A stretch of DNA of 64,000 nt. Origin: Piromyces finnis finn (Eukaryota > Fungi > Neocallimastigomycota). The notes under the pieces are model-generated. The model saw nothing but the letters and a program-made list of their open reading frames with translations. It did no database searches and was not told the DNA's origin. The position numbers and the translations under genes were made by a program. Within the stretch, counting starts at the first letter, position 1. Each line of letters begins with the position of its first letter. The stretch spans positions 1 to 64,000 of the forward strand of contig MCFH01000033.1 in NCBI GenBank assembly GCA_002104945.1, read 5' to 3'. This document shows positions 1 to 59,931 of this stretch, one piece after another.

Positions 1-773
1 ACACTTTATAAATTATTGATAAAGAATAAAAAACTATCAAGGAATTACTCTTTTTTTCATTTGAAATAATATTATAATATTAAATCAAATGGAAATAATA
101 AGAATAAGAATAATAAGAATAATTACTTTGAATTCATTTTATTATAAAAAAAAATTAATAAAACGCATACTTTTTCAAACGATCCAAGAGAGTGAACTTT
201 TTCCATAAAAAGTGTTAAAAATTTTATATTAATTTCATTGATAATATAGGATATATCCACTGGAGTATTTATTATTTAAATGAATAATATATATTATAAA
301 TTTACTATTAATATTAGTAGACTTATATTTTTTAATTTATAAAAAGGATATCACGTGATTATTGTATGTATAAACTAATAACTATGAAATATAATAAAAT
401 TGTATTGTTTAATTAATTATGTCCATATTTGGATAAATTCTTATTTAAAGGATCAAAGTTTTTTCTGTCATTTTGTAATAATTACTTTTTATGGTATTGT
501 TGGAATATTAAAAATTAATTAATAAATAAACCTTAATTATTAATAAAAAATGAATGATTTTTGTTTTATAAATTTTAAGTGTTTTTGCAATTAATTACTA
601 TTAGATACAAGTTTTATTATGAAGTATTTAAATAACCTTTTATTTATTATCACTTTAACAATTCTTTTAATGAATTTAATAGTAATCCATATAATGAAGC
701 TTCCTTTTCCTTATATAACAATAAGTTAAAATTTACCTGTATAGAAAATGATGAAAAAGAATATGAAATTAAT

Positions 774-3268: not shown

Positions 3269-3278
3269 TGTAACGAAT
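3269..3278 (+). repeat. First 10 bp of the E3 5' LTR (includes left copy of E1 target-site duplication GAAT, 3275-3278)
   Basis: Identical to the first 10 bp of E2's LTR (TGTAACGAAT); GAAT recurs at 16491-16494. Confidence 0.85.
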
Positions 3279-3926
3279 TGTTACAATGTTATATATTTCT
3301 TATATAATAACTTATTATTATCTTAATTTAATAACTTGAAGTTATTAAAAGTGATAATAATTTGTAACAAAAAAAAAAAATAAATAATTTGTTTTATTAA
3401 AACACAAAATTTATAAAAAAAAATAAAATGTTTTATTAATAACTATTTTATTAGTTAAATTTTATTAAAAATAATGTGTTTATGATTATTAACTATACTA
3501 ATAATAATGTTTAAATAAAGGAATTAAAAGATTATTTATATTTTTCTATTAATATAAACTTTAATTTATCTTCTTTAATTATGTTTTGTTATAAACAAAT
3601 ATTTAATTATAAATATCTAATTATTAATTACATTATAGTTTATTTACATGTTAATAATATCGGAATTTTAAAAATAATTATTTGTTTATTTATTTATTTT
3701 TTACTTAAATACTAATTAATTATAACTAAATTTAACTTTGTTTTGAATTATTATTTTAATATTTATTAATTTATTTCTACATTTAATTTTATCTTATTTA
3801 TTTATTTATTATAAATTTGTTTTTAAGTTTAATATTAAATTGTTAATTAGAACTTACTTATATAATTTTATTTCTTCATTAATAATTATTGTTGTTTTTA
3901 TAATCATTTAAGTTTGCCTTATATCA
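3279..3926 (-). repeat. E1 3' LTR (648 bp)
   Basis: TGTTACA...GCCTTATATCA; matches 9702-10344 plus 16487-16490, with only a 1-nt difference in an A-run noticed (12 vs 11 A). Confidence 0.95.
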
Positions 3927-3938
3927 ATACCTTGGCGG

Positions 3939-6900
3939 CTAAGATTTGACTTCGTCCCTTGAAGTCAGATTTTCTTCTTGTATTACATATGGATAAATGT
4001 TCTTTATATGTACATTACGATTTAATAGCTCGCCTGTTTGAGGATCTTCTAGTACAACAGTATTAAATTTTGGTTTCTGTACTACCTTAAAGGGGCCGTA
4101 GAAATACGGATCTAATTTGCTTCTTCCAATAAGTCTTATCATTACTAGATCGCCAGGTTGATATTTCTTCTTGAGTGCTTTCGAAAAACCCATTCGATGT
4201 TCCCAATATTTATTTGCTTTATCTGAGTATTCAGTCGCTTCTTTAACCCATCTCTGATGTCTTAAGAATCTTCTGAATATATATTCTTCTTCGGATTCTT
4301 CAGCGTCTTTAGGGAAATCTGGAAACATTATCTCCATTGGCCAAGTATCTTTTCTACCGTATAGCAATTCAAAACTGCTAAATTTTGTTTTAGAATTTCT
4401 GGTAGTACGTAAGGCCCAAAGTGCGGAAGGAAGACATACGTCCCATTCTATTTCATTTTCAATTAAGAGTCTTAATGTTTTTCCGATTTCGCGATTCCGG
4501 TTTTCTATCATTCCATTAGATTCTGGATGGTGAGGTGATACATAATGAACCCATGAACCATAAAGATCTATCATCATTTTGGTTATTTCAGATATAAAAG
4601 AACTTCCATTATCTGTTATTATGATTTCTGGGGGTCCGTGTCTAGCTATTACTTCAGTTAGAAATTTAATTACTTCTTCTGATTTGGTGTTAGGGATGGC
4701 TTTAGCCTCGACCCACTTGGTGAAATAATCTACTAGGGTAATAATGTAAGCATTACCTGATTTAGTTATGGGTAGCGGTCCTATTATATCCAAACCTACC
4801 CGTACGAACGGTCTTTCAATAGGTGTAATATTGGTAGCGGTGTTTTTTGGTAATGGCTTAGGTCGGAATAGTTGGCATTTGTGGCAAGATTTTACCCACA
4901 TTTTTACATAGTTCCATATTCCTGGCCAATAGTAGGATTGCATGATTCTATTTACTGTCTTCTCTGCACCTTCATGGCCTACTTGGTGTGCTCTATTTAT
5001 AATGTCTTTTTTATCTTCATCTTTGATTATTACTTTTAGGTAGAGTTCATTCTTTTTATAGTATAGTGTATTATCAACGACTTGATAATTTTTCTTGAAG
5101 TACTTTATTATTCCTTCTGGAAGGTCTAAGTCTTTGGGATTAAATTCACTGAGGATAGCATTTATACATAAGGTAACTTCATTGTTTTTAGATGGTAGCC
5201 TTGATAGAGCGTCAGCAAATACATTTTGTTTTCCTTTTTCATATTTAAGATCGACTTTATACTTATAGAATTCTTCTATCCATCGTGCATGTCTGCCCTT
5301 GGTTGGGATACCTTTCTTGAAGTAACCTAATAATGGTTTATGATCAGTTATTATGATTATTTTTTCTTTACCACTTATTATATAAGGTCTGAAATTCCTT
5401 AGACTATATATTACTCCTAGTCCTTCTAGATCGGTTACAGAGTAATTCTTTTCAGAAGACGAAAGTGTTCTACTAATACAGCATATTGGATGTTCTACTC
5501 CATCTTCTTCCCTTTGAAGTAGAACACCTCCGATTCCTTTTGTAGAGGCATCTGTTCTTATTATAAAATCTTTGTTAAAGTCCGGATATGCAAGTATAGG
5601 ATCTGAAAGTAAGCATTGCTTTATTTCTTCGAAAGCATCGTTACATTCATTGTCCCATATAAATTTTTGATCCTTTTTCAGTAAGTTAAAAAGTGGTTTT
5701 GCCTTTTTTGCAAAGTTTTGGATGAACTTCCTGTAGTAGCTTGCAAGTCCTAAAAATGATCTAAGTTCTTTAATATCCTTTGGAATGTCCCAAAGTGCTA
5801 GGTTTTGTACTTTGTTAGGAACGGTTTTTAATCCTTCTGGAGTAAGCACGTGTCCTAAGACTTCTACTGAGGTTTGGAAAAATTTACATTTTTGTAAGTT
5901 TACAGATAAGTTGTTTTTTGCAAATATTTTGAAGACTTTTCTTAAGTGTTGTAAGTGTTCCTGTAGATTTTTCGAATAGACTACGATATCGTCGATGTAA
6001 ACGAATAGACAGTCTCCTATAAGAGGTAGTAAAATTCTGTTCATTTCGCGTTGGAAGGATGCTGGTGCATTTGTTAGTCCAAATGGCATGACGCGAAAGT
6101 TGTAGTTTCCGAATTTAGTTGTAAAGGATGTTTTTTCTATGTCTTGTGGATTCATTGGTATCTGATGATATCCCGAGAACAGATCTAATGCGGAAAATAT
6201 CTTTGCATCTTTTACTGAAGATACAAGTTCATCTATGAAGGGTAATGCATACGAGTCTTTTATGGTTATTTCATTCAGCTTTCGGTAGTCGATACACATT
6301 CTCCATTTTCCGTTTTTCTTTTGAACGAGAAGAACAGGAAATGAGTAAGGAGAATGTGAGGGTTCGATCAGTCCTTTTTCGAGAAGTGAAATGATTTCTT
6401 TCTTTAGAATATCCGAGTGTTCTTTGGAAAGTTTATACGGTTTGAGTTTAATTGGTTTGTTGGTTGTTGTCATAATAGAATGAGGCTCTAAATTTGCTGT
6501 AGTAAGTTGGGATAGCGAAGTGGCCATCCATTCTTTGTATTCTAGTATTAGTTGTTCAAAATTTCTTTTTATTTCGTCTGGAGAATTTTCGATAATTTTG
6601 TTTAGTACTTCATCAAATTCCCTTTGTTCTTCGTTAGATATTGTTATTGCATTAATTAGTGGAATGTTTTGATTTTCTTTTTCAGTCATGGTAATCTTTG
6701 TTAACCCTTCATTTGATTTTTGATATATCGTATCATTATCTGGGTCTATTAGAAGTCTATACTTCTTCTGGACGCCTCTTCCTAGTATTATATCGTAATT
6801 GTTATTTATTTGGTTTAATATGTAGAAATCCTCTTTTATAGTTAAATGGTTGCCTAGTTTTATTTCTAGTGTTATTTTTTTATTAGTGAGAATTTTTGTA

Positions 6901-7796
6901 TTGTCAGCAGTTGTAATTTCCATTTCTTCGGCTTTATGAATTTCTGGATTTTTTAATTTATTTAAACCTCCTTTAGTTATTATATTGACGTTGGCACCTG
7001 TATCGAAAAGTATCTTTTGTTGATTTCCATTTACTTCACCAACGACTATTGGAATTTCGTAGTTATGTATGGAGCTGATGATTCTTCTTGATTTTCCTTT
7101 AGTACCAAGTTCTAATTCTTTTCTTAAGGTGGGACTTATATTGAGTAGCTGTGAAAGTGTTATTTTTGGGTAATAAGTGCTTATTTCTTTAATAATATCA
7201 AATTTCTCAATTCCTTGATTTGGAATTAATTTTTTGGTAATTTCCGTAGACTTTTTCTTTTCATTATTCTTTTGTGCTTTATTTGTATTTTCTTCTTTCT
7301 TGGGAGTATTTTTATTCGTTTCCATAATATTTCTAGGACTATTATTCTTTTTAATTGACTGATTATTTTTGTTTTCTTGAATTGGATTGGTTTGACTTTC
7401 TTTAGTTTGTTCCGTGTTGACTATCACATTTTCGGACTCTTTTTCTTCGTTTTTATTGTGGTTGTCTTTATTGATTAGTGGTTCATCTTCATCTACAATA
7501 ATTACTTCATCTTGCGTAGAGTCTGGATCTTCTATCATAGGTGTTCTCCTTCGAAGATCTCTAATCTTCTTTTTTTGTTGTTTTATTAATCTTGTATTCG
7601 GCTGATTTAATATAGCTGGTTTAATTATTGGTTTATTGAAATTCTTTTTGTTTGAGTCGCTGATTTGTTTATTTTTCTTTATAGCATTAATACTAAATTT
7701 ATTGTATTTCTGTTCATTCTTATATTGGAATTCTAAGTTTTCTGTTTCTGTATTATTTGCAATTTTGTTATAGTCGGAAGATTGCTTACTCCCCAT
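3939..7796 (-). CDS. pol: E1 pol polyprotein (aspartic protease, RT, RNase H, integrase)
   Basis: ILFDTGAN protease, YIDDIVVYS RT, RTDAS RNase H, H..GH..C..C zinc finger and GLDIIGP/TDNG integrase core, in gypsy order; no chromodomain at the C-terminus. Confidence 0.95.
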   Translation of the reverse strand: MGSKQSSDYNKIANNTETENLEFQYKNEQKYNKFSINAIKKNKQISDSNKKNFNKPIIKPAILNQPNTRLIKQQKKKIRDLRRRTPMIEDPDSTQDEVIIVDEDEPLINKDNHNKNEEKESENVIVNTEQTKESQTNPIQENKNNQSIKKNNSPRNIMETNKNTPKKEENTNKAQKNNEKKKSTEITKKLIPNQGIEKFDIIKEISTYYPKITLSQLLNISPTLRKELELGTKGKSRRIISSIHNYEIPIVVGEVNGNQQKILFDTGANVNIITKGGLNKLKNPEIHKAEEMEITTADNTKILTNKKITLEIKLGNHLTIKEDFYILNQINNNYDIILGRGVQKKYRLLIDPDNDTIYQKSNEGLTKITMTEKENQNIPLINAITISNEEQREFDEVLNKIIENSPDEIKRNFEQLILEYKEWMATSLSQLTTANLEPHSIMTTTNKPIKLKPYKLSKEHSDILKKEIISLLEKGLIEPSHSPYSFPVLLVQKKNGKWRMCIDYRKLNEITIKDSYALPFIDELVSSVKDAKIFSALDLFSGYHQIPMNPQDIEKTSFTTKFGNYNFRVMPFGLTNAPASFQREMNRILLPLIGDCLFVYIDDIVVYSKNLQEHLQHLRKVFKIFAKNNLSVNLQKCKFFQTSVEVLGHVLTPEGLKTVPNKVQNLALWDIPKDIKELRSFLGLASYYRKFIQNFAKKAKPLFNLLKKDQKFIWDNECNDAFEEIKQCLLSDPILAYPDFNKDFIIRTDASTKGIGGVLLQREEDGVEHPICCISRTLSSSEKNYSVTDLEGLGVIYSLRNFRPYIISGKEKIIIITDHKPLLGYFKKGIPTKGRHARWIEEFYKYKVDLKYEKGKQNVFADALSRLPSKNNEVTLCINAILSEFNPKDLDLPEGIIKYFKKNYQVVDNTLYYKKNELYLKVIIKDEDKKDIINRAHQVGHEGAEKTVNRIMQSYYWPGIWNYVKMWVKSCHKCQLFRPKPLPKNTATNITPIERPFVRVGLDIIGPLPITKSGNAYIITLVDYFTKWVEAKAIPNTKSEEVIKFLTEVIARHGPPEIIITDNGSSFISEITKMMIDLYGSWVHYVSPHHPESNGMIENRNREIGKTLRLLIENEIEWDVCLPSALWALRTTRNSKTKFSSFELLYGRKDTWPMEIMFPDFPKDAEESEEEYIFRRFLRHQRWVKEATEYSDKANKYWEHRMGFSKALKKKYQPGDLVMIRLIGRSKLDPYFYGPFKVVQKPKFNTVVLEDPQTGELLNRNVHIKNIYPYVIQEENLTSRDEVKS

Positions 7797-7808
7797 AACT
7801 AATTTAAA
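7775..7808 (-). promoter_or_regulatory. Predicted -1 ribosomal frameshift signal between E1 gag and pol
   Basis: U UUA AAU heptamer (7808-7802) in gag frame immediately before the gag UAG. pol is in the -1 frame and open through the site. A GGGAG/CUUCC stem starts 8 nt downstream. Confidence 0.72.
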
Positions 7809-8641
7809 TGTTGGATGTTTTCAGGACAATCATCAATGACATGACCTATACGTTTACAATTTAGGCAAACATTTATCTTGAGTTCTGCTAATTTTTGGGT
7901 TATTTCTTTCATGTCGTTATTTTCTTCTTGATATTGTCTATAGTTTTTGTGCTTGTAATTATTATTCCATTGATTTTGATAAGTTTTATTTTCCTGTGGA
8001 TGTATCGAGTTAGAGTTCGAATTATATAGTTTTGTTGTTTTATTTGTACTGTTATAAACATTCTTTTGTGATTGTGATGGCCTTTGATCATTTTTATTTT
8101 TATTCCGGTTGTCCTCTATTATATTATATAATCTTTCCTTTTTCGAAGTTATCTTCATTGCTTCTTCTAGAGTATTTGGCTCTTCTTCTAATAGTTTTTC
8201 ATATATTCTAGTCCAATTTCTAAAGGCATTAACGTAATATGAAGCTATTATCTCTTCTGGAATTGACGTAGATTTTGTGGCTTCGTTCAAAATATTCATA
8301 AATCTCAAATCAAAGTCGCATATCTTTTCTCCTTTTCTTATACTTAGAGAAGATAAATCCAATATCTTAGAGTTCTTTGCTGAACTTCTTTTAAAATAGT
8401 TATTTAAATTATTTATTATTGTATTATACGAGTCAGGTGTACTCTTGTTTAATCCGTTTAACACGATAGTCCTAGCCTTTTGTTCTGTTAACGGTAGTAA
8501 AAATTTTATTTTATCCTTTTCTTCTATGTCATTAGAAGTACACCAGTACTCAAATTCAAACTTCCAATCTACAAATTTGGTTTTTCCATTTCCCAAAATT
8601 GGAAGTCTTGAAAAGGTTAACGTTTTTGTAGAAGTATCCAT
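7799..8641 (-). CDS. gag: E1 gag with CCHC zinc knuckle
   Basis: 280-aa ORF directly upstream of pol, ending CLNCKRIGHVIDDC. Confidence 0.9.
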   Translation of the reverse strand: MDTSTKTLTFSRLPILGNGKTKFVDWKFEFEYWCTSNDIEEKDKIKFLLPLTEQKARTIVLNGLNKSTPDSYNTIINNLNNYFKRSSAKNSKILDLSSLSIRKGEKICDFDLRFMNILNEATKSTSIPEEIIASYYVNAFRNWTRIYEKLLEEEPNTLEEAMKITSKKERLYNIIEDNRNKNKNDQRPSQSQKNVYNSTNKTTKLYNSNSNSIHPQENKTYQNQWNNNYKHKNYRQYQEENNDMKEITQKLAELKINVCLNCKRIGHVIDDCPENIQHLN

Positions 8642-8669
8642 TATTTTTGTATATCTTTAAAGGAATAAA

Positions 8670-8701
<32 letters not shown>

Positions 8702-9209
8702 ATTATTATTATTATTTGTATTATTGTTACTATTAGTCACTATTGTTAGTTTTTATAATTAGTTATTATTATTAGTTATTATTATTAATTATTATTTTGG
8801 TAGTTTCTATTAATATGGTAATCATATAATTGTTTCATTTATATATATTATAAGATAAAAATATTTTCAGAACCAAAACTACTCAAGGATCTTTCGACCT
8901 CCAAGCATAAACCGTCAGAATAAAAATATATATTATGCAGTGTGTGCCAATGCGAGGACTGGACCTTACCACTTTCTCTGCACAATATGCTGATATCTTA
9001 AACCTTATTTATGCCTGCTCTACTCCCCTCCTATATAGAGCAGTTTTTCTTACTTTCTATTTTTTTAAATTATTTTTATATCCCTGTAACCTCTACTTAT
9101 CGAATTATTTATATAATAATAACTTATATTTAAATTTTCTTAATATTAATATTTTATGATACTTCTTACTGTATGTTAATAGTAATAATATTGTTATTCT
9201 TTTTACTAT

Positions 9210-9246
<37 letters not shown>

Positions 9247-9687
9247 TTATTTAAATTAATTGTATGAATGATAATTTGTTAAACTTATCCTAATTGAATA
9301 TAGTAATTAATAGTTGATACTGAAATCTTTATATATAATATTTGAGTGATATTTGAATATAATATTTTATAATATTTGAATGATGTTTGCATATAATTTT
9401 TCTAATATTTGAATATTATTTTGAATTATTTTGAATATAATTTTTTTTTTTTTTTTATAATATTTAAATGATATTTGAATATAATTTTTTTATAATATTT
9501 GCATATTATTTTGAATTTTACTTTGAATATGATATATTAATAATATTTAAATGATATTTGAATATAATGTTTTAAAACATAGGTTCTTAATCTTGTCTTT
9601 TGAGTATGTAATACCTATATATATAAATATAAATGTATAAATTTGTTAGTAAAAGAAAATTTTATATTACTCTTACCGGGTTAAAAT

Positions 9688-9700
9688 GGATTCTCCACCA
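9688..9700 (-). promoter_or_regulatory. E1 primer-binding site, complementary to a tRNA 3' end (probably tRNA-Ala)
   Basis: Minus strand TGGTGGAGAATCC 1 nt after the 5' LTR; implies a tRNA ending ..UUCUCCACCA (U70-C71-C72-A73, typical of Ala). Confidence 0.8.
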
Positions 9701-9701
9701 T

Positions 9702-10344
9702 TGTTACAATGTTATATATTTCTTATATAATAACTTATTATTATCTTAATTTAATAACTTGAAGTTATTAAAAGTGATAATAATTTGTAACAAAAAAAAA
9801 AATAAATAATTTGTTTTATTAAAACACAAAATTTATAAAAAAAAATAAAATGTTTTATTAATAACTATTTTATTAGTTAAATTTTATTAAAAATAATGTG
9901 TTTATGATTATTAACTATACTAATAATAATGTTTAAATAAAGGAATTAAAAGATTATTTATATTTTTCTATTAATATAAACTTTAATTTATCTTCTTTAA
10001 TTATGTTTTGTTATAAACAAATATTTAATTATAAATATCTAATTATTAATTACATTATAGTTTATTTACATGTTAATAATATCGGAATTTTAAAAATAAT
10101 TATTTGTTTATTTATTTATTTTTTACTTAAATACTAATTAATTATAACTAAATTTAACTTTGTTTTGAATTATTATTTTAATATTTATTAATTTATTTCT
10201 ACATTTAATTTTATCTTATTTATTTATTTATTATAAATTTGTTTTTAAGTTTAATATTAAATTGTTAATTAGAACTTACTTATATAATTTTATTTCTTCA
10301 TTAATAATTATTGTTGTTTTTATAATCATTTAAGTTTGCCTTAT
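9702..10344 (-). repeat. E1 5' LTR, main part (last 4 bp ATCA displaced to 16487-16490 by E2)
   Basis: Near-identical to 3279-3922. Confidence 0.95.
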
Positions 10345-10753
10345 TGTAACGAATCATAGAAATTAGTAACCTGTCTTAGTGGTTAGTAACTAAGACCTTG
10401 GTTTGAACTACTCGAGTTCGAAACCTCATTAATATCTTTTTTTTAATTATTAAAATATTTTATAACGAAATTTTACCAAAGAAGATAATTTCTGATTGGC
10501 TTAAAAAATTAAGTTGTAAAATTTTTATAAATTTACTTTTAAAAACATTTATATAAATACGAGTGAAATTTCTCAAAAAATTATTTTGAATTCGAGTTTT
10601 TATTAACAAAGAAATTTTATAATAAAAATAAAATTATTAAACACTAACCTGTTATAATTTTGTTAAGTGTTCAATAATAAAATTTTTATTTGCTTTTATT
10701 ATTTTCCTTTTTATATATTTGTGTTTTTATTTATTGAACATTAGTTCTTTACA
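10345..10753 (+). repeat. E2 5' LTR (409 bp)
   Basis: TGTAACG...CTTTACA, repeated at 16073-16481. Confidence 0.96.
10372..10444 (+). promoter_or_regulatory. tRNA-type Pol III promoter mimic in E2 LTR (A-box, B-box, T8 terminator); also at 16100-16172
   Basis: TGTCTTAGTGGTTAG (A-box/D-loop-like), GTTCGAAAC (B-box) 44 nt after T8, and a T-run at 10437-10444. Confidence 0.7.
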
Positions 10754-10763
10754 ATAAAAACTC
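10753..10763 (+). promoter_or_regulatory. E2 self-priming PBS (Tf1/sushi type)
   Basis: AATAAAAACTC is the exact reverse complement of GAGTTTTTATT (10594-10604) in the LTR, about 35 nt downstream of TATATAAATA. Confidence 0.8.
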
Positions 10764-11455
10764 CTAAAATATATAATAACACCTTAGTGTTTAAAAAAGG
10801 AAGAATTTTTAATTTATTAAAAAATTAAGTAAGTCAGTGAAGCTTATTTTAACAATAAGGGTACTGAAAACAAAAGTAAAACCCACAGTTATTATAAGGG
10901 GAGCGCCAGGACGCTTAATTTAATAATAAAGAAAAAATTCATTTTCTAATAAAACGTTTTCTACTTTTAATAAATAAAATTAAATTTTATTTATTATTTT
11001 TGAAAAAATATTAAAATAACAAAGAAGTTAGGATTCAATACCTCCCTTAGCGTGGATAGTTGGACACCTATACGTAATACTTTGTTGTTTAGATATTATT
11101 AATAATCGGGGAATTAAACCTATTTTTTTTCTTTCCGCTTAATTAAGTAAGTGACAATAAAGAAACTAATACCGTTAATTCCTTTTATTGAAAATTTTCA
11201 TTTCCAATATTAACAATTGATAATATCTACGTTATCAACAAAGAGCTACAAGGGACCTAGTATTGAATACTAATAAAATTAAATATTTGATGGTCCAATA
11301 CTATTTAATTTGACTCTTTGTCTATATTTAAAATATTTTAATCAATAAATAATAATAAAGATTTAATTTTTTTTTTCTTTCTTAATTTCTTCAAACATAA
11401 CTTTATCTTATTTACATAATTTTTATTTTCAAACAATTATATTTTTTTAATTTTA

Positions 11456-14400
11456 ATGGAAGGACAAATATTTGATAACGCCTCACTAAAAGACGGTTTC
11501 GCAGGAGACAGAAAATATCTCAAAGGTTTCTTAGCCAAAATAGAACTTGTTTTTCTCCTTTATCCCGAAAGATATCAAGATGAAGAGAGCAAGGTTATCT
11601 ACCTGATTTCTCGCCTTTATGGAAATGCATTAAATTGGGCCGCTACGCTTATTGACAACCATGATCCATGTCTGACCAACTACCAAGCATTCAAGGAAAG
11701 ACTAAAGGCATTCTACGGGAACAATGATGCAGTCTACGTAGCCAATCAAATGCTACGTACTCTCAAGCAACATCGTTTGGGCGGCATCAGAGGATACATC
11801 CTTGAATTTAACAAATACTCTGATGAATCTAACTGGAATGAAGAGGCTAAGATGGATGCTTTTATCGCTGGGCTCAACCAAGAAGTTGCAATGAAGATAT
11901 TAGAGATGTTCCCAGGACCAAGAGATTTGTTTTCCCTCCAAACTATTGCAGCTAGAATAGACTCCAGACTTGCTACCAGGGGATTATTTTTTGACAAAAA
12001 TACTAAGGGACCAAGTTCTAATTCCAGCAATGGCTCCAGAAAGGCTTCCACAAATCTAAAAGAACATCCCAAGAAGAAAAGATACTTTGGTCCGTTATCC
12101 AAGGAAGAAAAAGAAAGAAGAAGTAAGGAAAACTTATGTGTCTATTGTGGATCTCCAGGACACCAACTGAAAGATTGTCATAAGAGAAGAAATAAAAACT
12201 CAGCATTCGAATCTTTAGTTTCTCTACAAAATAATTCTACCAATTCCAAGAAAAATCAACAAGATAGGGTAACCTCAAATTTTAAATTATCGTTTGAACT
12301 AGACACAAAAATTCTTATAGACTCCGGTTCTACACTTAATCTAATAGATGTCGACTATTGCAACGATCACAATATTCCCTACCACTATGAAGAAGATTTA
12401 CCCAACGTATTCGGTATTGGTGGTAGCCAAAAACTGTTCGGAGTTACTCCACTTCTTAATCTTCGCTACATGGATCACCTATGCCGTACTGTCTTTTACG
12501 TTACTGATCTACCTGTATATCCTTGTATTCTAGGTCTACGTTGGCTTAAGGAACATAATCCAAGTATTGACTTTGAAAATAATAAATTATCCTTTGGTTC
12601 TTCATATTGCTTGGATCATTGTATGACTCTCCCTTCGAATGTTCCCGAATTCCATCAGGAAACTTCTGTTTTTTCTACTGATTGCAATAACTCTTCTTCC
12701 GTTTCTTTGCCTATTTTTATTGACAAACCTAAATCTTCTTTTTCAAATTCTAAGTTATCTCATTCTCGTAATCCCAAAGAAAATCGTTCTAAATCTGTCT
12801 TAATTAACAATGAATCTGTTAACGATCCTTTATCACAAGAGACTTGTACTGTCATGGCTTCTAATATATCTCTTTCTAAAGTTGATTCTTGTTCACCAAA
12901 AAACTCTTTTAAAGACTCAAATCCTACTACTAAACTTCCGAAGGAATTAGAATCATATATGGACGTCTTTAGCGAATCTTCTGCTGCTCAATTACCACCT
13001 CATCGTCCTTATGATTGCCAAATAAACCTAATCGAAAATGCCAAGCTATTTTATGGACCAATCTACCCACTAACAGACGAAGAAACAAGAGTTTTGAAGG
13101 ATTATATCGATGAAAACCTCAAAAAGGGTTTCATTAGGAAATCCAAATCTCCTGCTGGTGCGCCTGTACTTTTCGTTCCTAAAAAGAATGGTGAACTCCG
13201 TCTTTGTCAAGATTATAGGGAACTCAACAAAATTACCATTAGAGATTCCTATCCTCTACCTCTGATTCAAGATATGCTAGAGCATCTTGGTAAAGCGAAA
13301 ATCTTCTCAAAATTGGATTTACGATCAGCATATAATTTGGTCCGAATCAAAAAGGGTGATGAATATAAAACAGCTTTCACCTGCAAATTCGGCCACTTTG
13401 AATACCTGGTAATGCCATTCGGACTGAAAAACGCCCCGGCTGTTTTTCAGCATTTTATCAATGATGTTCTGGAAAATATTCTAGGGATTTTTGTTTATTC
13501 ATATATTGACGATTTAATTATTTTTTCTGAAAACCATAAATCCCACATTAAGCACGTTATCGAAGTCCTGGATCGCTTAAGAAATGCTGGTCTTTATGCT
13601 AAGCTTGAAAAGTGTGAATTCTTTGTTTCCTCTATTGATTTCCTTGGTCATCGGATATCCTCTGAAGGTATACATATGGACCCCAATAAAGTTTCTGCTA
13701 TTATTAATTGGCCAGTTCCGTCCAGTGTCAAGGAAGTTCAATCTTTTATTGGCCTAGCCAACTACTATCGTCGGTTTATTCCTAATTTTGCCAAAGTTGC
13801 ACAACCCCTTCACAGACTACTTCGTAAAAACGTTAAATTTGATTTTTCCTCTGAAGCTCTTGATGCATTTAATACCATTAAATCATTAATTTCATCTGCT
13901 CCCATCCTGTCTCACCCAAATCGTGATCTTCCCTTTATTGTTGAAACCGACTCTAGCAACTTTGCTATAGGAGCAGTTCTGTCTCAAAAATCTCCTGATG
14001 ATAAAATGATCCATCCTGTCGCTTTCTATTCAAGATCTCTTACTTCCGCTGAAAGAAACTATCCTATATACGATAAAGAACTTTTAGCTATTGTTAATGC
14101 TCTTGAAACTTGGCGACATTTTCTCAAAGGTGCTTTAACCCCGTTTACTATTTATTCAGATCATCGAAACTTACTATATCAAAAGAAACCGGAAAAAATG
14201 TCACAACGTCTTGTTCGTTGGGCCCTTTTCCTTTCCGAATTTAACTTTAAAATTCTCTACCGCTCTGGTTCATCTAATGGTAAACCTGATGCGCTTTCAC
14301 GAAGACCTGATTATATGGATTCCTCTCTTCCTTCTGATGCTCCTTTTTCGGTTTTACGCCCTGAGAATTTCTGCGCTTTGATTTGTTCCATTTCTTCTCT

Positions 14401-15820
14401 TAATGATGAAATATTATCTGAATATGTGAACGACTCTTTTTACATTGACATTTGCAATTTTCTTGAAAATAAGAATCTCCCAGCTCCACATCCACAAAGT
14501 AATAAATTCTCCCTTAGTAATAGTTTTCTTCTTTTTGATAGTAGAATCTATGTCCCTTTAAAATGCCGTCCCTCCGTTTTGAAACTCTGTCATGATTCCC
14601 CCTCTGCCGGTCATTTTGGTATCCGCAAAACTATTTCTTTGATCTCTCGTGACTTTTGGTGGCCATCCATTTCTATTGATGTTAAGAATTATATCCGATC
14701 TTGCGAGATTTGTTGCCGCTCCAAGCCTTCTCGTCATAAACCATATGGTTTACTTCAACCCCTTGAGATTAGTGACCATCCTTGGGCTTCTATTTCTATG
14801 GATTTCATTACTGACCTCCCTCCTTCGGATGGATTTAACACTATTCTTGTTGTAGTTGACCGCCTTACTAAAATGTGCCACCTCATTCCCTTTAAAGGTA
14901 TTCCTTCTGCTTCTGATACTGCTTTTGCTTTTTTGAATTATATTTTCAAAATTCACGGTCTCCCCTCTGAAATTATTTCCGATAGAGGCGCGCAATTCAC
15001 TTCGAAATTTTGGAAATCTATTTGTCAATCTTTGGACGTCAATGTTAAATATTCTTCACCATATCATCATCAATCCAATGGCCAAACGGAGAGGGTAAAC
15101 TCCGTTGTTGAACAATATTTAAGATGCTTTTCTAATTATAAAGGAACAAACTGGATCAACTTTCTTCCATTGGCAGAATTCAGTTACAATAATGCTGTTC
15201 AAGACTCAACAAAATTCTCACCATTCTTCCTAAATTATGGTTATCACCCAAAATACTCTCCGGTAATTCCTGACCAAACGAATGTTCCAAGAGCTGAAGA
15301 GTTTACAAGAGACTTTGAAGACCTAATGGAGAAACTAAAAGAAAACTTAAAGAAGGCCATCCAAGTTCAAAAGAAATATGCCGACAAGTATAGACAAGAA
15401 CCTCCGACATTCAAGACTGGTGACAAAGTATGGTTGGATAGCTCCTTGATAATTCATAAAGGAAATAAAAAATTTAATCCTAGGAAACTTGGCCCGTTTA
15501 GGATAATTAGTAAAATCTCTAATCTCACTTATAAATTAGAATTACCAAAATCGCTGAAGATTTACCCAATTGTTCATGTTTCAAACCTAGAACCGTATTA
15601 TGAAGATAGTTTTGGAAGAATCAAAGATCCACCTCCACCTATAATAGTAAATGAAGAAGAAGAATACGAAGTAGAAGAAATACTTGATAAAAGAAAGCAT
15701 TATGGGAAGATTCAATATCTAATAAAATGGAAAGGTTATCCGCTTTCAGAAGCATCTTGGGAACCTGAAAGTAATTTAAACTGCGATGAACTAATTAAAA
15801 ACTTTAATAATTCACATTAG
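11456..15820 (+). CDS. E2 gag-pol polyprotein with C-terminal chromodomain
   Basis: Retrotransposon gag, CVYCGSPGHQLKDC knuckle, LIDSGS protease, YIDDLII RT, RNase H, integrase, and [20 protein letters not shown] chromodomain; 1454 aa with no stops. Confidence 0.96.
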   Translation: MEGQIFDNASLKDGFAGDRKYLKGFLAKIELVFLLYPERYQDEESKVIYLISRLYGNALNWAATLIDNHDPCLTNYQAFKERLKAFYGNNDAVYVANQMLRTLKQHRLGGIRGYILEFNKYSDESNWNEEAKMDAFIAGLNQEVAMKILEMFPGPRDLFSLQTIAARIDSRLATRGLFFDKNTKGPSSNSSNGSRKASTNLKEHPKKKRYFGPLSKEEKERRSKENLCVYCGSPGHQLKDCHKRRNKNSAFESLVSLQNNSTNSKKNQQDRVTSNFKLSFELDTKILIDSGSTLNLIDVDYCNDHNIPYHYEEDLPNVFGIGGSQKLFGVTPLLNLRYMDHLCRTVFYVTDLPVYPCILGLRWLKEHNPSIDFENNKLSFGSSYCLDHCMTLPSNVPEFHQETSVFSTDCNNSSSVSLPIFIDKPKSSFSNSKLSHSRNPKENRSKSVLINNESVNDPLSQETCTVMASNISLSKVDSCSPKNSFKDSNPTTKLPKELESYMDVFSESSAAQLPPHRPYDCQINLIENAKLFYGPIYPLTDEETRVLKDYIDENLKKGFIRKSKSPAGAPVLFVPKKNGELRLCQDYRELNKITIRDSYPLPLIQDMLEHLGKAKIFSKLDLRSAYNLVRIKKGDEYKTAFTCKFGHFEYLVMPFGLKNAPAVFQHFINDVLENILGIFVYSYIDDLIIFSENHKSHIKHVIEVLDRLRNAGLYAKLEKCEFFVSSIDFLGHRISSEGIHMDPNKVSAIINWPVPSSVKEVQSFIGLANYYRRFIPNFAKVAQPLHRLLRKNVKFDFSSEALDAFNTIKSLISSAPILSHPNRDLPFIVETDSSNFAIGAVLSQKSPDDKMIHPVAFYSRSLTSAERNYPIYDKELLAIVNALETWRHFLKGALTPFTIYSDHRNLLYQKKPEKMSQRLVRWALFLSEFNFKILYRSGSSNGKPDALSRRPDYMDSSLPSDAPFSVLRPENFCALICSISSLNDEILSEYVNDSFYIDICNFLENKNLPAPHPQSNKFSLSNSFLLFDSRIYVPLKCRPSVLKLCHDSPSAGHFGIRKTISLISRDFWWPSISIDVKNYIRSCEICCRSKPSRHKPYGLLQPLEISDHPWASISMDFITDLPPSDGFNTILVVVDRLTKMCHLIPFKGIPSASDTAFAFLNYIFKIHGLPSEIISDRGAQFTSKFWKSICQSLDVNVKYSSPYHHQSNGQTERVNSVVEQYLRCFSNYKGTNWINFLPLAEFSYNNAVQDSTKFSPFFLNYGYHPKYSPVIPDQTNVPRAEEFTRDFEDLMEKLKENLKKAIQVQKKYADKYRQEPPTFKTGDKVWLDSSLIIHKGNKKFNPRKLGPFRIISKISNLTYKLELPKSLKIYPIVHVSNLEPYYEDSFGRIKDPPPPIIVNEEEEYEVEEILDKRKHYGKIQYLIKWKGYPLSEASWEPESNLNCDELIKNFNNSH

Positions 15821-15923
15821 TAATAGTTATTAATTTAAAAAAAAATTAGTAATTGATAAGAGAAAAAGAGAATAGAAAATAGAAAATAGAAAATGAAAAA
15901 ATATATTTATAATTTAATATTCA

Positions 15924-15974
<51 letters not shown>

Positions 15975-16060
15975 TTCAAAATGTATTCACTCGTTTCAAT
16001 TATTTCTTTTATAATAAAGTAACAAATAAATTTAGTTGATTCGTCTGGTATCCGAATCCT

Positions 16061-16069
16061 GGAGGAGGA
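16061..16069 (+). promoter_or_regulatory. E2 polypurine tract
   Basis: GGAGGAGGA just upstream of the 3' LTR. Confidence 0.8.
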
Positions 16070-16072
16070 CCA

Positions 16073-16481
16073 TGTAACGAATCATAGAAATTAGTAACCT
16101 GTCTTAGTGGTTAGTAACTAAGACCTTGGTTTGAACTACTCGAGTTCGAAACCTCATTAATATCTTTTTTTTAATTATTAAAATATTTTATAACGAAATT
16201 TTACCAAAGAAGATAATTTCTGATTGGCTTAAAAAATTAAGTTGTAAAATTTTTATAAATTTACTTTTAAAAACATTTATATAAATACGAGTGAAATTTC
16301 TCAAAAAATTATTTTGAATTCGAGTTTTTATTAACAAAGAAATTTTATAATAAAAATAAAATTATTAAACACTAACCTGTTATAATTTTGTTAAGTGTTC
16401 AATAATAAAATTTTTATTTGCTTTTATTATTTTCCTTTTTATATATTTGTGTTTTTATTTATTGAACATTAGTTCTTTACA
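16073..16481 (+). repeat. E2 3' LTR (409 bp)
   Basis: Same length as, and apparently identical to, 10345-10753. Confidence 0.96.
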
Positions 16482-16494
16482 CTTATATCAGAAT

Positions 16495-17044
16495 CTATTA
16501 GATAATTAATATTGTCTTAATGGTTAGTATTTAAGACATTAATCTGGATCACTCGGGTTCGACTCACACCTTGATCCGAAATCTATTTAAGATTATTTAT
16601 TTAACAATTTAATTTATGACTCATAGAAACTTATAGAACTTATTCGAAAAAGAATAAGTTCGAATATTCGAAAAATCAAATATTTTTTGTAATTTTATCA
16701 CGGGATTCATTTTATGCAATTTTTAATTAATTTAAAGAACAATCTAGAAAGATAATTAAAATTTTTGATTTAGCCACATCAGATTTAGAAAAAGTATAAA
16801 TAGAAGTGGTTTGAATCGAAAATTAAAAAATTGTGTTTTTATTAACTATTAACTTTTAACTTTTAAATTTTTAAAAAAAAAAAAAAAAAAAAAAAAATAT
16901 TTATTATTAAAAAATAATTTAAATAAAAAATAATTAAAAAATTTTAATAAATAAAATTAATTGACTTATTGGGATCAAAATTATTATCTATATAAAGTTT
17001 ATTAATTACCACATTATTAAATATTTATATAGATACGCGTTACA
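16495..17044 (+). repeat. Remainder of E3 5' LTR (about 560 bp total with 3269-3278)
   Basis: Homologous to E2's LTR head (GTCTTAATGGTTAGTATTTAAGAC..GGGTTCGACTC); ends TACA followed by the same ATAAAAAC PBS motif. Confidence 0.85.
16513..16565 (+). promoter_or_regulatory. tRNA-type Pol III promoter mimic in E3 LTR
   Basis: TGTCTTAATGGTTAG A-box-like and GGTTCGACTC B-box, with the same 44-nt T8-to-G53 spacing as in E2. Confidence 0.7.
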
Positions 17045-17416: not shown

Positions 17417-20400
17417 ATGGATGAAGAATTGATGAACCATGCTACGTTGAAGGATGGTTTCGCTGGAAATCGTCGTTTCTTTAAGGGTTTTCTCGCTAAA
17501 ATAGAATTAATCTTTATGGTCTACCCAGAGCGCTACGCGGATGACGAAGCAAAAATCGTCTATATTATTTCAAGACTATATGGTGAAGCCTTGAATTGGG
17601 CTGCATCATTAATTCACAACCATGACGAATGCCTATTAAATTATGACTCATTTGTTGCAAAGCTTAAATCTGTGTTTGGCAACAACGACTCAACATTTGT
17701 GGCTAATCAAAAGCTTCGAACTATAAAGCAAAGGAAAATCGGAGAAATTCAAAAATATATTCTTGAATTTAACCGATACTCTGATGACTCCTCTTGGAAC
17801 GAAAGTGCAAAAATGGACGCCTTCTTAGCTGGACTACAAGATCAAGTCGCCAATAGAATTTTAGAAATGTTTCCCGGTCCACAAACGCTACTAAATTTAC
17901 AAGTTATAGCATCAAGAATCGATTCTAGAATCGATACCAATAGAAGATTTTTCAACAACAATCACTCTAATAGCACCAATCAAAACCGAAGAACTGAAGC
18001 AAATAGAAAACCTTTCACTTCGAGAAATAAGAAAACTTACGGACCGCTTACCTCAGAAGAAAAGGCTAGAAGAATTAAGGAGAATCTCTGTTTATATTGT
18101 GGTTCTCCAGATCACAAGTTAAACAACTGTCCAAAAAGAAGTAAAAATGAAAAAACAGCTGGGACTCATATTTCTAATTCTATGCCTGAAAAGAAACCTA
18201 GAATAAGATTCTCCGATAATCCCCATTTGAAACAACCAGTTTTTGAGTTCCAACTCAATACTTCCGACGTCTCCGTTAACACTAAACTACTAATTGATTC
18301 AGGATCCCAACTTAACCTAATAGATGTGGTCTTTGCAGAAGAAAACAACATTCCTTTTGATAAATCCGTCTCTCTCGACAAAATCTCTGGTATTGGTGGG
18401 GAACAACTAGTTTTAGGTAAATCCATCCCAATTTCAATTAAATACAAAAACCACCAATGTAAAACTATATTTTATATTGTAGACCTCCCGGGATATTGTG
18501 GTATCTTAGGTGCTGAATGGTTACATCAGCACAACCCTATTATTAACTTCGTTGAAAAAGAATTATCTTTTAATTCAAATTTCTGTTTGTCACATTGCTC
18601 TGTCATTCCAAATGTTGCCCCTACTTATGTTATTTCTTCTATTTCTAATGATTCCAAACCTTCTTGTAGCACTTCAACCAATTCTTATATCCATGATTCT
18701 GTAACAAATCTTCCAAAAAGTCAAGATTCCACCACTAACACTTCTAGTAATCAAGAAGTTATTCTACCCGCTGAACTTCAAGCCTTTGAAGATGTATTTA
18801 ATGAAAAAGCCGCTGAACAATTGCCGCCACATAGGCAATACGATTGTGAAATCCGTCTTAAGCCGGACTCCAAACTTTTCTATGGACCAATTTATCCTTT
18901 AACGGATAAAGAATCAATGGTATTGAAGGAATACATTGATGAAAATTTGCGAAAAGGTTTCATCAGACCTTCGAAGTCTCCGGCTGGTGCCCCAGTGCTT
19001 TTTGTCCCGAAGAAAAATGGTGAACTACGTCTATGTCAAGATTATAGGAAATTAAACGAAATCACAATCCGTGATTCATACCCTTTACCATTAATTAATG
19101 ACATGTTGGAACATCTAGGTAAAAGCAACATCTTCTCCAAACTTGATTTAAGATCCGCTTATAATCTTGTGAGGATCAAAGAAGGTGATGAATTCAAAAC
19201 TGCTTTTACTTGCAAATATGGACACTTTGAATATACTGTAATGCCGTTTGGTTTGAAAAACGCACCTGCAGTATTTCAACATTTCATTAATGATGTGCTT
19301 GAGGGAATCTTGGGAATATTTGTCTTTAGTTATATTGATGACTTAATAATTTTCTCGGAAAATTTTAAAACCCATGTAATCCAGGTTAAAGAAGTACTTA
19401 AAAGACTTAGAAAAGCGGGACTTTACGCAAAACTTGAAAATGTGAGTTCTTTGTCCCATTTATCGATTTCTTAGGTCATCGTATATCTTCTGAAGGTATT
19501 TTAATGGATCCAAAGAAAATTGCATCTATCTTGGAATGGCCAACTCCTAAAAGCGTTAAAGAGGTTCAAGCGTTTCTTGGGTTAGCTAATTATTATAGAA
19601 GATTCATTGCCGGTTTTGCTGAGATCGCACAACCACTGAATGCGTTACTTAAGAAGGATGTTAAATTCTGCTTCTCTCATCAGTGTGAAAATTCTTTTAG
19701 TTTAATCAAATCCAAATTTGCTTCTTCCCCTGTTCTTGCATACCCGAATCGTGATATACCTTTCATAGTTGAAACGGATGCAAGTAATTTCGCTATAGGA
19801 GCAATCCTTTCACAAACGAATCCAAAAGACAAGTCGGTTCATCCAGTGGCATTTTTCTCTAGATCGCTTAGTTCTTCTGAAAGGAACTATCCGATCTACG
19901 ATAAAGAACTTTTAGCAATTGTAGCTGCTTTAGAAACTTGGCGACATCTACTCAAAGGAACTACTCAGCCTTTCAAGATTTTCTCGGATCATAGAAATTT
20001 GCTCTACCAGAAGAAACCCGAAAAAATGACTCAAAGATTAGTTCGTTGGTCTCTGTTCCTTGCCGAGTTTAACTTTATCATCGTTTATCGGTCGGGTTCT
20101 GCTAATGGTAAACCTGACGCTTTATCTAGAAGACCAGATTACTTAGAAAATTTTAAGTATAACAATGACATTCCAAATTCCGTCCTTAGACCCGAAAACT
20201 TTTGTGCCATGGTTCTGGATAACAATCCCCTTATGGATAAAATCATTTCAAATAGCAAAGATGATAAATTTTACTTTGAAGTATGCAAATATTTAGAAAC
20301 TCAAATTCCCCCAGTCCCTCATTCGCAAATCGAAAACTTTAAAATTCAAGATGGTGTATTATTATTCAATAATAGGATCTATGTCCCCCAAGATTGTCGT

Positions 20401-21651
20401 TTGGAAGTTCTTAAAATTTGCCATGACTCACCCTCCGCTGGACACTTCGGATTAAAGAAAACTACTTCCTTTATTGTTCGTGACTTTTGGTGGCCTTATC
20501 TCTCAGTCGATGTCAAAGAATATGTTAGGTCTTGCGAAATATGTTGCCGATCAAAGGATTCTCGACACAAACCCTATGGATTTCTCTCCCCTTTGGAAAT
20601 TGCTGAACGTCCTTGGTCTTCCTTATCTATGGACTTTATTACGGATCTCCCACCTTCCCAAAAGTATACTTGCATTCTTGTAGTCACCGATAGATTAACT
20701 AAATTATGCCACTTCATTCCTTTTGAGAACATCCCTTCTGCCTCCGATACTGCTGATGCTTTCATGATCAACGTTTTTCGTCTCCATGGATTACCAAATG
20801 AAATTCTTTCGGATAGAGGTACTCAATTTACCTCTAAATTCTGGAATTCAATTTGTAAATCTTTTGATATAAACCTAAAATTTTCTTCTTCCTACCATCA
20901 CCAAACAAACGGGCTGACGGAGAGGGTAAACTCCGTTGTAGAACAATACCTAAGGTGTTACTCAAATTATAAAGGCTCTAACTGGTACAAGTTCTTACAT
21001 CTTGCTGAATTTAGTTACAATAATGCCGTTCAAGAATCTACCAAAACTTCACCATTTTTTGCTAACTATGGCTATAATCCAAAACATTCTCCAATTTTAC
21101 CAAGTCGTACCGAGATACCAACTGCGGATGAATTCACAAGAAATTTCAAAGAAATAATTAAAACTCTTAAAGATAACTTGAAGAAATCCATTAATCAACA
21201 AGAAAAATTCGCAAACAAACACAGAAGTAAAGCCCCTGAACTCAAGGTAAATGATAAAGTATGGATCAACAGTTCTTTAATAATGCGTAATGGTAATAAG
21301 AAGTTAAAACCTAGAAAACTTGGTCCGTACAAAATAATTGAAAAAATTTCTCCAGTTTCTTTCAAATTGGAGTTACCAAAAGAAATTCGCATTCATCCAG
21401 TCATCCACGTTTCAGAATTGGAACCCTACCATGAAGACAAGTTCAATAGAAAGCAACCGCCACCTCCGCCGGTTATTGTGGATAATAAGGAAGAATTTGA
21501 AGTCGAAGAGATATTGGATAAAAGAAGATATTATGGTAAAGTCCAATATCTAATTAAATGGAAAGGATACCCAATATCTGAAGCATCTTGGGAGCCAGAA
21601 ACAAATTTGAATTGTCCAGAACTACTTAAGGAATTCAACAAAAAGAAATGA
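17417..21651 (+). pseudogene. E3 gag-pol with chromodomain, split by a 1-nt deletion at about 19437-19440
   Basis: ORFs 17417-19474 and 19504-21651 join into an E2-like polyprotein if one A is added to GAAAA (KLEKCEFF in E2). May be a homopolymer sequencing error. Confidence 0.85.
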
Positions 21652-36300: not shown

Positions 36301-36778
36301 TTAACTTTTTTTTTTACTTAACAATAAAATTTCTTTTTTTTTTTTTTACTTGTTAATATAAAAAAAAAAAAATTAAAATTGTTACACAGAATTAAATTAA
36401 AAGACTTTTTCTATAATTAAAATATTAATTTATTTAAATTTAATTTATAATATATTGAAAATCATTATTTTTTATATTCATTCAATATATAATACATATA
36501 TTAATTATATATATATTTTCTTTGTTTTTTTAAAACTATAAAAATTTAAAATTTTCTTCTTTTTCTATAAGTATTTCCAATAATTCATCCTTAACTTTCA
36601 TAATAATTTTATTATTTCAATTTTCCATAAAAAAATAAAAAAAATCAAAGTAAACCATTGAAATAATAAAACAGAAATAAATTTTAATTTATCAATGGAA
36701 TAATCATATAAAATAAAATAAAATAAAATAAAACAACTTCAAATAAAAATAAATTATAAAAAATAAAAATAATTCAAA

Positions 36779-54256: not shown

Positions 54257-54372
<116 letters not shown>

Positions 54373-59810: not shown

Positions 59811-59931
<121 letters not shown>

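Follow-up and report, generated by a model that had tools for sequence, protein, structure and literature searches.

A candidate tRNA-derived A/B-box module at the start of chromovirus LTRs from anaerobic gut fungi, and its possible recognition by the RNA polymerase III machinery

Does the LTR of an autonomous retrotransposon begin with a stretch that derives from a tRNA gene, and is such a stretch recognised by the RNA polymerase III (Pol III) machinery? The question is raised by a chromovirus, here called E2, in the genome of Piromyces finnis, where the original prediction had placed A-box and B-box motifs in both LTRs of E2 and in the LTR of a diverged neighbour, E3. We analysed the first 64,000 nucleotides of contig MCFH01000033.1 (the window). 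The DNA here is about 80% A+T, with a G+C content of 12-36% across the window, and the host genes that it carries are typical of anaerobic gut fungi: a reading frame at 39498-41891 on the minus strand combines GH9, GH43, a ricin-type lectin and three CBM_10 dockerin domains, and Cthe_2159 and DUF6055 proteins are also encoded. Among named organisms, Orpinomyces sp. has the protein nearest to the E2 polyprotein, and the other relatives come from metagenomes of gut or rumen type; host genes and relatives together identify the host as a Neocallimastigomycota fungus. In an exact look-up, the E2 protein matched no record. E2 belongs to a nest of three elements, the parts of which are as follows (numbers beginning with L are our names for contigs that encode relatives).

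10345-16481, plus strand: E2, an autonomous chromovirus of 6137 bp (6.1 kb)
10345..10753, plus strand: E2 5' LTR, 409 nt, TG..CA, 100% identical to 16073-16481
16073..16481, plus strand: E2 3' LTR, with an identical copy of the module at 16100-16172; 78.2 bits with the covariance model
11456..15820, plus strand: E2 gag-pol, a single open frame of 1454 aa with a C-terminal chromodomain
16038-16058 and 16059-16072, plus strand: E2 hairpin preceding the polypurine tract (PPT), and the PPT itself, kept in L081, L091, L094, L095, L104 and L107
10340..10344 (left) and 16482-16486 (right): target-site duplication CTTAT of E2, 4 nt inside the E1 LTR terminus
3279..16490, minus strand: E1, a Ty3/gypsy element without chromodomain, with E2 nested inside
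3279-3926, and 9702-10344 plus 16487-16490, minus strand: E1 LTRs, 648 nt, 99.8% identical
ending at 9699, minus strand: E1 primer-binding site (PBS) TGGTGGAGAATCC, of tRNA type
7799-8641 (gag) and 3939-7796 (pol), minus strand: E1 genes, in different frames as in the relatives L108 and L110
3275-3278 and 16491-16494: target duplication GAAT of E1, 4 bp
3269..3278, plus strand: first piece of the E3 5' LTR, TGTAACGAAT, severed by E1
16491..17044, plus strand: second piece of the E3 5' LTR, its first 4 nt being the duplicated GAAT; the PBS follows from 17045
17417..21651, plus strand: E3 gag-pol, with chromodomain, one frameshift and one stop

The E2 polyprotein contains the Pfam domains Ty3_capsid, RVT_1, RNase H, Integrase_H2C2, rve, SH3_Tf2-1 and Chromo, and in both E2 and E3 the chromodomain lies at the C-terminus of the integrase (Pfam Chromo E = 7.9e-17 and 2.4e-17, respectively). 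E3 is a diverged relative of E2, with a protein identity of about 56-67%. Its severed first piece has the same sequence as the first 10 nt of the LTRs of E2, L081, L091, L104 and L107, and its second piece scores 71.3 bits with the covariance model; the two pieces were compared separately and not joined. No E3 3' LTR was detectable downstream, where alignment scores stayed below those of shuffled controls, and a lone 11-mer at 22072 could not be tied to any LTR. The junctions, with TGTAACGAAT to the left of E1 and with the GAAT and CTTAT duplications, establish the order of insertion: E3 was there first, E1 inserted into the LTR of E3, and E2 then inserted into the LTR of E1.

The motifs themselves are found in all three LTRs:

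10372..10382, plus strand: A-box-like motif of the E2 5' LTR, TGTCTTAGTGG, with A-box position T8 at LTR nt 28
10416..10424, plus strand: B box of the E2 5' LTR, GTTCGAAAC (G53..C61), fitting GTTCRANNC as quoted in PMC5391098
10437..10444, plus strand: run of eight T in E2, a possible Pol III terminator on weak evidence
16513-16523, plus strand: A box of E3, TGTCTTAATGG, in the second LTR piece
16557-16565, plus strand: B box of E3, GTTCGACTC, matching GTTCRANNC

The E2 motif TGTCTTAGTGG matches the D-arm part of the Rfam tRNA consensus and fits the pattern TRGCY..YGG (PMC10886601) except at position 10, and G52 is replaced by A in E2. The module begins at LTR nt 28-29 in E2 and E3, and from T8 of the A box to G53 the distance is 44 nt in both, so that the motifs and their identical spacing are as the original prediction described them. 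When the LTRs of E2 and E3 were compared by blastn, the module was the sole detectable similarity (78% over 50 nt). When the window was scanned for a loose A-box pattern with GTTCRANNC 28-40 nt behind it, three matches came up, each in one of these LTRs, against none in 200 simulated windows of equal dinucleotide make-up; the pattern was fitted after the sites had been seen, and the comparison thus leans its way. With this reservation, a chance origin of the paired boxes is excluded. The predicted terminator of E2 fared less well: the run of eight T is present, and a run of that length is also found in one of the two LTRs of L092 (L092f), with runs of four to six T in others, but it counts as weak evidence because T runs are frequent in DNA of 80% A+T and because E3 has no run of four or more T near its module. 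From E3 it also follows that termination, if there is any, is not conserved.

The position of the module relative to the promoter of the element can be read from the priming signals:

10551..10560, plus strand: TATA-like box of the LTR Pol II promoter, 179 nt downstream of 10372
10594..10603, plus strand: GAGTTTTTAT, the reverse complement of 10754-10763 and start of R, for Tf1-type self-priming
10754..10763, plus strand: PBS ATAAAAACTC, directly 3' of the E2 5' LTR

Since the PBS is the reverse complement of 10594-10603, R starts near 10594, and since this start follows the TATA-like box (which lies about 35-43 nt upstream of the self-primer segment), the module is placed at the 5' edge of U3, which spans about 10345-10593 in the E2 5' LTR. 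With the predicted Pol II start at about 10594, 222 nt downstream of 10372, the template RNA begins some 220 nt 3' of the module. This is in keeping with the original placement of the unit in U3, some 180-220 nt ahead of the Pol II signals. Self-priming of this kind has been described for Tj1 (PMC4600332). The PBS and the self-primer co-vary by matching changes in L092 and E3, and the same PBS arrangement as in E2 is present in L081, L091, L092, L093 and L104.

A functional tRNA gene was considered and dropped. ARAGORN reported no tRNA gene in the window or in related loci, and the Rfam tRNA model gave no match on the LTRs even at E <= 10 and none on seven loci at E <= 5, so that ARAGORN and Rfam, the latter at gathering and permissive thresholds, were negative on every LTR; the Rfam model scored 69.9 bits on the genuine tRNA-Arg gene of L108. 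The canonical T stem is unpaired in both E2 and E3, as had been noted at the outset. The cloverleaf is gone, and the prediction is for two hairpins:

10373..10396, plus strand: predicted hairpin SL1, 8-bp stem with loop GGTTAGTA, the A box forming the 5' arm and the loop
10400..10425, plus strand: predicted hairpin SL2, the B box forming the 3' arm, paired with the upstream GGTTTGAAC
16513-16538, plus strand: SL1 of E3, predicted fold

The fold of the whole E2 module has z = -3.4, and the same two hairpins are predicted in eight of nine lineages, with z from -2.8 to -4.4 in six of them. The upstream arm of SL2 contains GAAC, and in L104 the SL2 stem is a perfect one of 9 bp. The innermost pair of SL2 switches between T-A and C-G across lineages, and in SL1 we find two-sided changes from T-A to C-G, from T-A to A-T and from G-C to A-T. 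In a sequence-based alignment the cells that can pair amount to 83% for SL1 and 95% for inner SL2, against 20-49% and 5-66% in a control in which the partners were slid by 1-3 columns. The two-sided changes in the stems mean that structure has been kept too, and not the boxes alone; the covariation comes from few, related sequences, and is suggestive of a hairpin shape conserved as well as the box letters. The proposal that the boxes rather than the structure are selected is therefore an oversimplification: the boxes are kept and the cloverleaf has been lost, but the stretch does not look structurally unconstrained. Similarly, the B box has no T stem to sit in, yet it is predicted to be paired as the 3' arm of SL2. 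Because a pure DNA-binding site needs no compensatory changes, these changes speak for selection acting on the module while single-stranded, and this single strand may just as well be the element's own Pol II RNA, in its 3' UTR. A precursor of Dicer-type small RNAs was set aside, the stems being just 7-10 bp long. The unit of L081 looks nearer to a tRNA: one 4-bp stem resembles a D arm, and a hairpin whose loop has 7 nt resembles a T arm; in this unit, GGTTCAATAC sits in the T-arm-like hairpin and is not a 3' arm. In L095 the A-box letters stay aligned though the SL1 stem uses other positions.

LTR starts were recovered from contigs encoding relatives, and also by means of a covariance model built on those LTR starts. 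The survey contigs are L081/L082, L091, L092 (two LTRs, head to head), L095 (two LTRs), L104-L106 and L107. A metagenome scan mostly returned distant chromoviruses of other organisms, and the five close ones had no usable LTR. Pattern scans for the PPT/LTR junction gave no match in viral contigs; eight matches in bacterial and archaeal genomes have a G+C content of 40-64% and were taken as chance. A search of viral contigs with the E1 pol was likewise without a match.

The module is present in 10 LTR lineages, E2 and E3 included, even though the polyproteins are only 56-74% identical to that of E2. In all 10, a conserved polypurine tract is followed by an LTR whose first letters are TGTAACGAA or differ little from it, and the A box has its T8 at LTR nt 28-36. 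At the LTR tip the mean pairwise identity is 0.72, falling to 0.44 in the spacer; it is 0.71-0.78 for the A box with its hairpin, 0.35 for the linker, 0.69 for the SL2 5' arm and 0.76 for the B box, and 0.38-0.41 downstream. Judged by these identities, the module is as conserved as the LTR tip that the integrase binds, and its flanks have diverged. The comparison of boxes with flanks that was suggested as a check on the original prediction thus comes out in its favour (0.69-0.78 for the module against 0.35-0.44 for the flanks). GTTC and C61 are invariant in nine lineages. Position 10 of the A box is T rather than G in most lineages, and G in L081, L092r and L095. As a property of the whole family the claim has to be narrowed. 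The LTR of L094 (58% aa identity) begins differently, and the 346 nt of it that are available contain no module, so that the module is not essential for the family, and in L107 the reading frame is open, but SL1 is damaged and the B box has lost A58. We consider it highly probable that the stretch is a conserved tRNA-derived A/B-box module.

Evidence that bears on Pol III comes from the elements that have inserted beside the module. Ty3, Tj1 and DGLT-A insert about 1-15 bp upstream of tRNA genes by way of the Pol III machinery (PMC4600332, PMC5006619), the reported distances being within 12 bp for Tj1 and about 15 bp for DGLT-A (PMC4600332, PMC5006619). For tRNA-like A/B-box sites in the rDNA of Dictyostelium, occupancy by TFIIIC/TFIIIB has been deduced from where retrotransposons insert, and sites that bind TFIIIC only are not used by Ty3 (PMC5391098). 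Contig L108 holds an E1 relative (67% aa) whose pol ends at 5240. Its 3' LTR starts with TGATAA (about 5222) and most likely ends with TTATCA at 6041, these being inverted termini, and a tRNA-Arg(TCT) gene with a T7 run behind it lies at 6057-6130. The preferred LTR end at 6041 is 15 nt before the mature 5' end of the tRNA and 22 nt before its T8; an alternative end, CA at 6050, is 6 nt before the tRNA gene and 13 nt before T8. With either boundary the distances fall within the range published for Ty3, Tj1 and DGLT-A. The 5' LTR of L108 is not on the contig, and the 3' LTR end is placed by the terminal inverted repeats because its alignment to the LTRs of L110 and E1 gave only an AT-rich smear.

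The same distance recurs at the chromovirus LTRs. The E1 terminus at 16490 lies 22 nt upstream of T8 of the E3 A box, which equals the L108 offset with the preferred boundary. In L092, which is from another sample and represents another chromovirus lineage than those of the window, nt 813-824 match, at 12 of 12 positions, the opening 12 nt of the E1-family LTR of L110 when these are reverse-complemented. This match abuts a chromovirus LTR that resumes at its nt 6, 23 nt before its T8; a comparison of L092 725-824 with the 3' ends of E1-family LTRs was uninformative. The E1 family is thus found at the same spot in two of the five LTR starts with a visible upstream flank. The target beside the tRNA gene is unrelated in sequence to those in the LTRs, and what the sites have in common is the distance to an A box. 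Among the contigs of E1 relatives, one of three informative ones (L108) adjoins a tRNA gene; L109 has no tRNA gene on its contig, and L110 and L111 offer no flanks. A second chromovirus is present upstream of the resident module at both loci, E2 at 27-31 nt and the reverse LTR of L092 at about 124 nt, and these two cases are too few to show a preference. The E1-family insertions lend the targeting platform of the original prediction a support that is independent of the boxes, and they make it somewhat likely that the Pol III machinery recognises the module in vivo. As Ty3 avoids TFIIIC-only sites, the insertions here would argue for a complete TFIIIC-TFIIIB platform and not for a site of the ETC type.

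The explanation to which we give modest preference is that LTR nt 28 to about 100 of these self-priming (Tf1-like) gut-fungus chromoviruses is a decayed tRNA-derived unit that is recognised by Pol III. The cloverleaf would have been lost, the type-2 Pol III boxes kept at tRNA spacing and their surroundings reshaped into two hairpins. TFIIIC would bind the B and A boxes on the DNA and position TFIIIB over the LTR edge, some 20 nt ahead of the A box, with a predicted Pol III start about 10-19 nt before the A box, at LTR nt 9-20. Copies with a T run, such as E2, might then yield a Pol III RNA of roughly 80-90 nt consisting of the two hairpins, which would account for the retention of the stems. 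TFIIIC sites and tRNA genes serve as chromatin boundaries (PMC3395662, PMC2040200). A TFIIIC boundary might accordingly benefit the element by keeping the Pol II promoter next to it active within heterochromatin, to which chromodomain integrases are drawn; the price would be an LTR edge on which elements that target Pol III genes can land. The stronger version, in which the module is a working tRNA-gene mimic, a portable TFIIIC/TFIIIB platform that shields the Pol II promoter and lures tRNA-seeking elements, perhaps including its own family, is one that we put forward as possible but doubtful.

Much of the same evidence could be read as the mark of a structural element of the retroelement's RNA or single-stranded DNA, with the boxes a relic of a tRNA or SINE that has no Pol III role. 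Such an element might act in export, stability, packaging or plus-strand priming, and the stem-loops do follow the polypurine tract in the 3' UTR. The fold predicted in eight of nine lineages (z -2.8 to -4.4 in six), the pairs that change on both sides in SL1 and SL2, the presence of U3 at the 3' end of the full-length transcript and the failure of ARAGORN and Rfam to see a tRNA are all in line with it, as is the finding that the SL1 3' arm and the SL2 5' arm, which lie outside the boxes, are as conserved as the boxes. However, GTTC..C61 and the GG-containing loop stay fixed while the stems, and in L095 and L081 even their register, change; two E1-family insertions at 22-23 nt from T8, as at a real tRNA gene, are left unexplained; and L094 has replicated without the module. 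We regard a purely structural role as unlikely, and it would in any case be compatible with Pol III recognition rather than its exclusive alternative. If the palindromes were instead binding sites for Pol II factors, the module would be a U3 enhancer and its likeness to A and B boxes a coincidence. Enhancers are usual in U3 regions, both hairpins are inverted repeats at the DNA level, and about 180 nt separate the module from the TATA box downstream of it; but palindromic half-sites should stay fixed and not change on both arms with pairing kept, a match to both boxes at tRNA spacing is not expected by chance, and the E1-family insertions again go unexplained, for which reasons we consider an enhancer improbable.

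The insertions could also be detached from the module altogether, if E1 came to lie beside it through the clustering of elements in an AT-rich, gene-poor nest or through a preference for LTR tips. In favour of this, insertions are often nested, E2 lies no more than 9 nt from the site of E1, a copia-type element sits inside the LTR of another chromovirus (L093), and a single E1-family copy was recovered beside a true tRNA gene. Against this, two independent E1-family insertions, in different samples and lineages, are 1 nt apart relative to the A box, and their offset matches the tRNA-Arg case. A sequence preference fails as an explanation because the tRNA-gene and LTR targets share no similarity. 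Clustering or tip preference therefore seems very improbable to us.

As far as the literature searched shows, what is new here is a tRNA-derived module in an autonomous chromovirus, tRNA-derived LTRs as such having already been published. The original prediction knew of no tRNA-type equivalent; this does not hold for LTRs in general, given the Helenus TRIMs (PMC10886601), and it stands for autonomous chromoviruses, for which our literature search, whose coverage is incomplete and which is no proof of novelty, found no such module described. On the mobile elements of Neocallimastigomycota the search returned nothing beyond surveys. If the module recruits the Pol III machinery, this would be the first autonomous LTR element seen to do so, Cassandra and Helenus being tiny and non-autonomous, with Pol III as the proposed sole promoter, and nature would here provide an instance in which one mobile element mimics the target that another seeks in the genome. 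Such mimicry of a host target by one element would steer the insertion of others and build nested islands. For an understudied fungal phylum it yields a checkable prediction: maps of occupancy and censuses of insertions should show LTR starts resembling tRNA genes. Annotation is affected as well, since tRNA-like matches and nested insertions in these very AT-rich genomes are otherwise open to misreading.

Among known systems the nearest is Helenus (TRIMp3; Kojima 2024), a group of non-autonomous elements of fungi, animals and a plant with tRNA-derived LTRs, which keep boxes A and B in a non-functional tRNA-like stretch, as Cassandra and Ajax do with 5S (PMC10886601). Helenus elements are 311-1263 bp long and code for no protein, and the Pol III unit is thought to be their sole promoter; autonomous partners, it has been argued, must depend on Pol II and would not be expected to have LTR sequence of this sort in common with them (PMC10886601). 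The likeness to E2 lies in the tRNA-derived stretch with conserved boxes in the LTR, the non-functional tRNA and the fungal hosts, and for E2, too, an origin by capture of a SINE or tRNA into the LTR is plausible. In contrast, E2 is autonomous, at 6137 bp and with an open gag-pol of 1454 aa, and its template RNA would come from a TATA-driven Pol II start about 220 nt downstream, which makes the module an accessory at the U3 edge. Because these two defining features (non-autonomy and a Pol III unit as the start of the template) fail, we did not file E2 under Helenus. The Cassandra TRIMs of plants differ further, in that they are non-autonomous, have a 5S-type (type 1) promoter and are documented to be transcribed (as summarised in PMC10886601). 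With Tf1/Tf2 the likeness is in the element as a whole, which has one gag-pol frame, a chromodomain, SH3_Tf2-1 and a PBS complementary to the LTR segment at the start of R; in the literature searched we found no tRNA-like module described for LTRs of the Tf1/Tf2 type.

For E1 the comparators are Ty3 of S. cerevisiae, Tj1 of S. japonicus and DGLT-A of Dictyostelium, all of which insert upstream of Pol III genes. E1 resembles them as a Ty3/gypsy element with a tRNA-type PBS and with a relative 6-15 nt upstream of a tRNA gene; unlike theirs, targeting by the E1 family is drawn from two LTR modules and a single tRNA gene. The duplication made by E1 here is 4 bp long, and the E1 family is seen in both orientations, whereas Tj1 is reported in one orientation only (PMC4600332). 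Finally, the module shares with ETC sites and tRNA-gene boundaries a B box outside a functional tRNA gene and a position suited to a boundary. ETC sites, however, bind TFIIIC without TFIIIB and are not used by Ty3 (PMC5391098), whereas the E1 insertions argue for TFIIIB at the module. By this analogy, the module looks more like a tRNA gene than like an ETC site.

Immediately 5' of the polypurine tract, a family of self-priming (Tf1-like) chromoviruses of anaerobic gut fungi carries a hairpin, gattcg-tctggtat-ccgaatc, that is kept across its members. It is present also in L094, a metagenome contig carrying a relative that lacks the tRNA-like A-box/B-box module found near the start of the LTR, and in L095 both arms are altered (aattcg..cgaatt) with pairing retained. 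The 5' arm could serve as an alternative pairing partner for LTR nucleotides 5-11 (ACGAATC). The hairpin, and two LTR features on other contigs, lie at these positions:

Window 16038-16072, hairpin and polypurine tract
L081 5858-5894, hairpin and polypurine tract
L095 about 4728-4766, hairpin and polypurine tract
L095 about 55-566, minus strand, module-bearing LTR of the chromovirus family within a different family member's gag region
L093 359-3461, minus strand, copia-type pol (RVT_2, rve) adjoining a chromovirus 5' LTR

At the downstream end of E3, the diverged relative of the autonomous chromovirus E2, no 3' LTR is detectable past the reading frame (window 21652-22800). The 11-mer at 22072-22082 is an isolated exact copy of TAGTGGTTAGT, the E2 A-box core; its surroundings contain neither a B box nor any similarity to an LTR. 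Elsewhere in the window, the 632-aa ORF at 774-2672 had no match in a Pfam search, and a host gene cluster of the type usual in anaerobic fungi (28285-41891) encodes DUF6055, two Cthe_2159 carbohydrate-binding proteins and one GH9/GH43/ricin-lectin protein bearing three CBM_10 dockerins. Long tandem arrays occupy 26812-27517, 54210-54515, 59747-60055, 61840-62112 and 23771-25196, with periods of 42 nt, 9/12 nt (three places) and repeats of ~415-475 nt.

On three metagenome contigs the 3' LTR continues directly into the 5' leader (L081 5895-6460, L104 5111-5560, L110 4964-5730); these assemblies are collapsed at the LTR and therefore hold a single LTR per element, without host flank. Just the last ~55 nt remain of the chromovirus 5' LTR next to the copia-type pol, and the reverse-oriented LTR of L095 may be a solo LTR, because the sequence following it differs from the family's primer-binding site. 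L092 (1-830) holds a head-to-head pair of chromovirus LTRs separated by 100 nt, and because this stretch terminates in the LTR end of a relative of E1, the Ty3/gypsy element without chromodomain, the second chromovirus entered an E1-family LTR that had itself inserted at the first. L092 repeats the order of the window, in which E1 hit a chromovirus and then received a second one in its own LTR.
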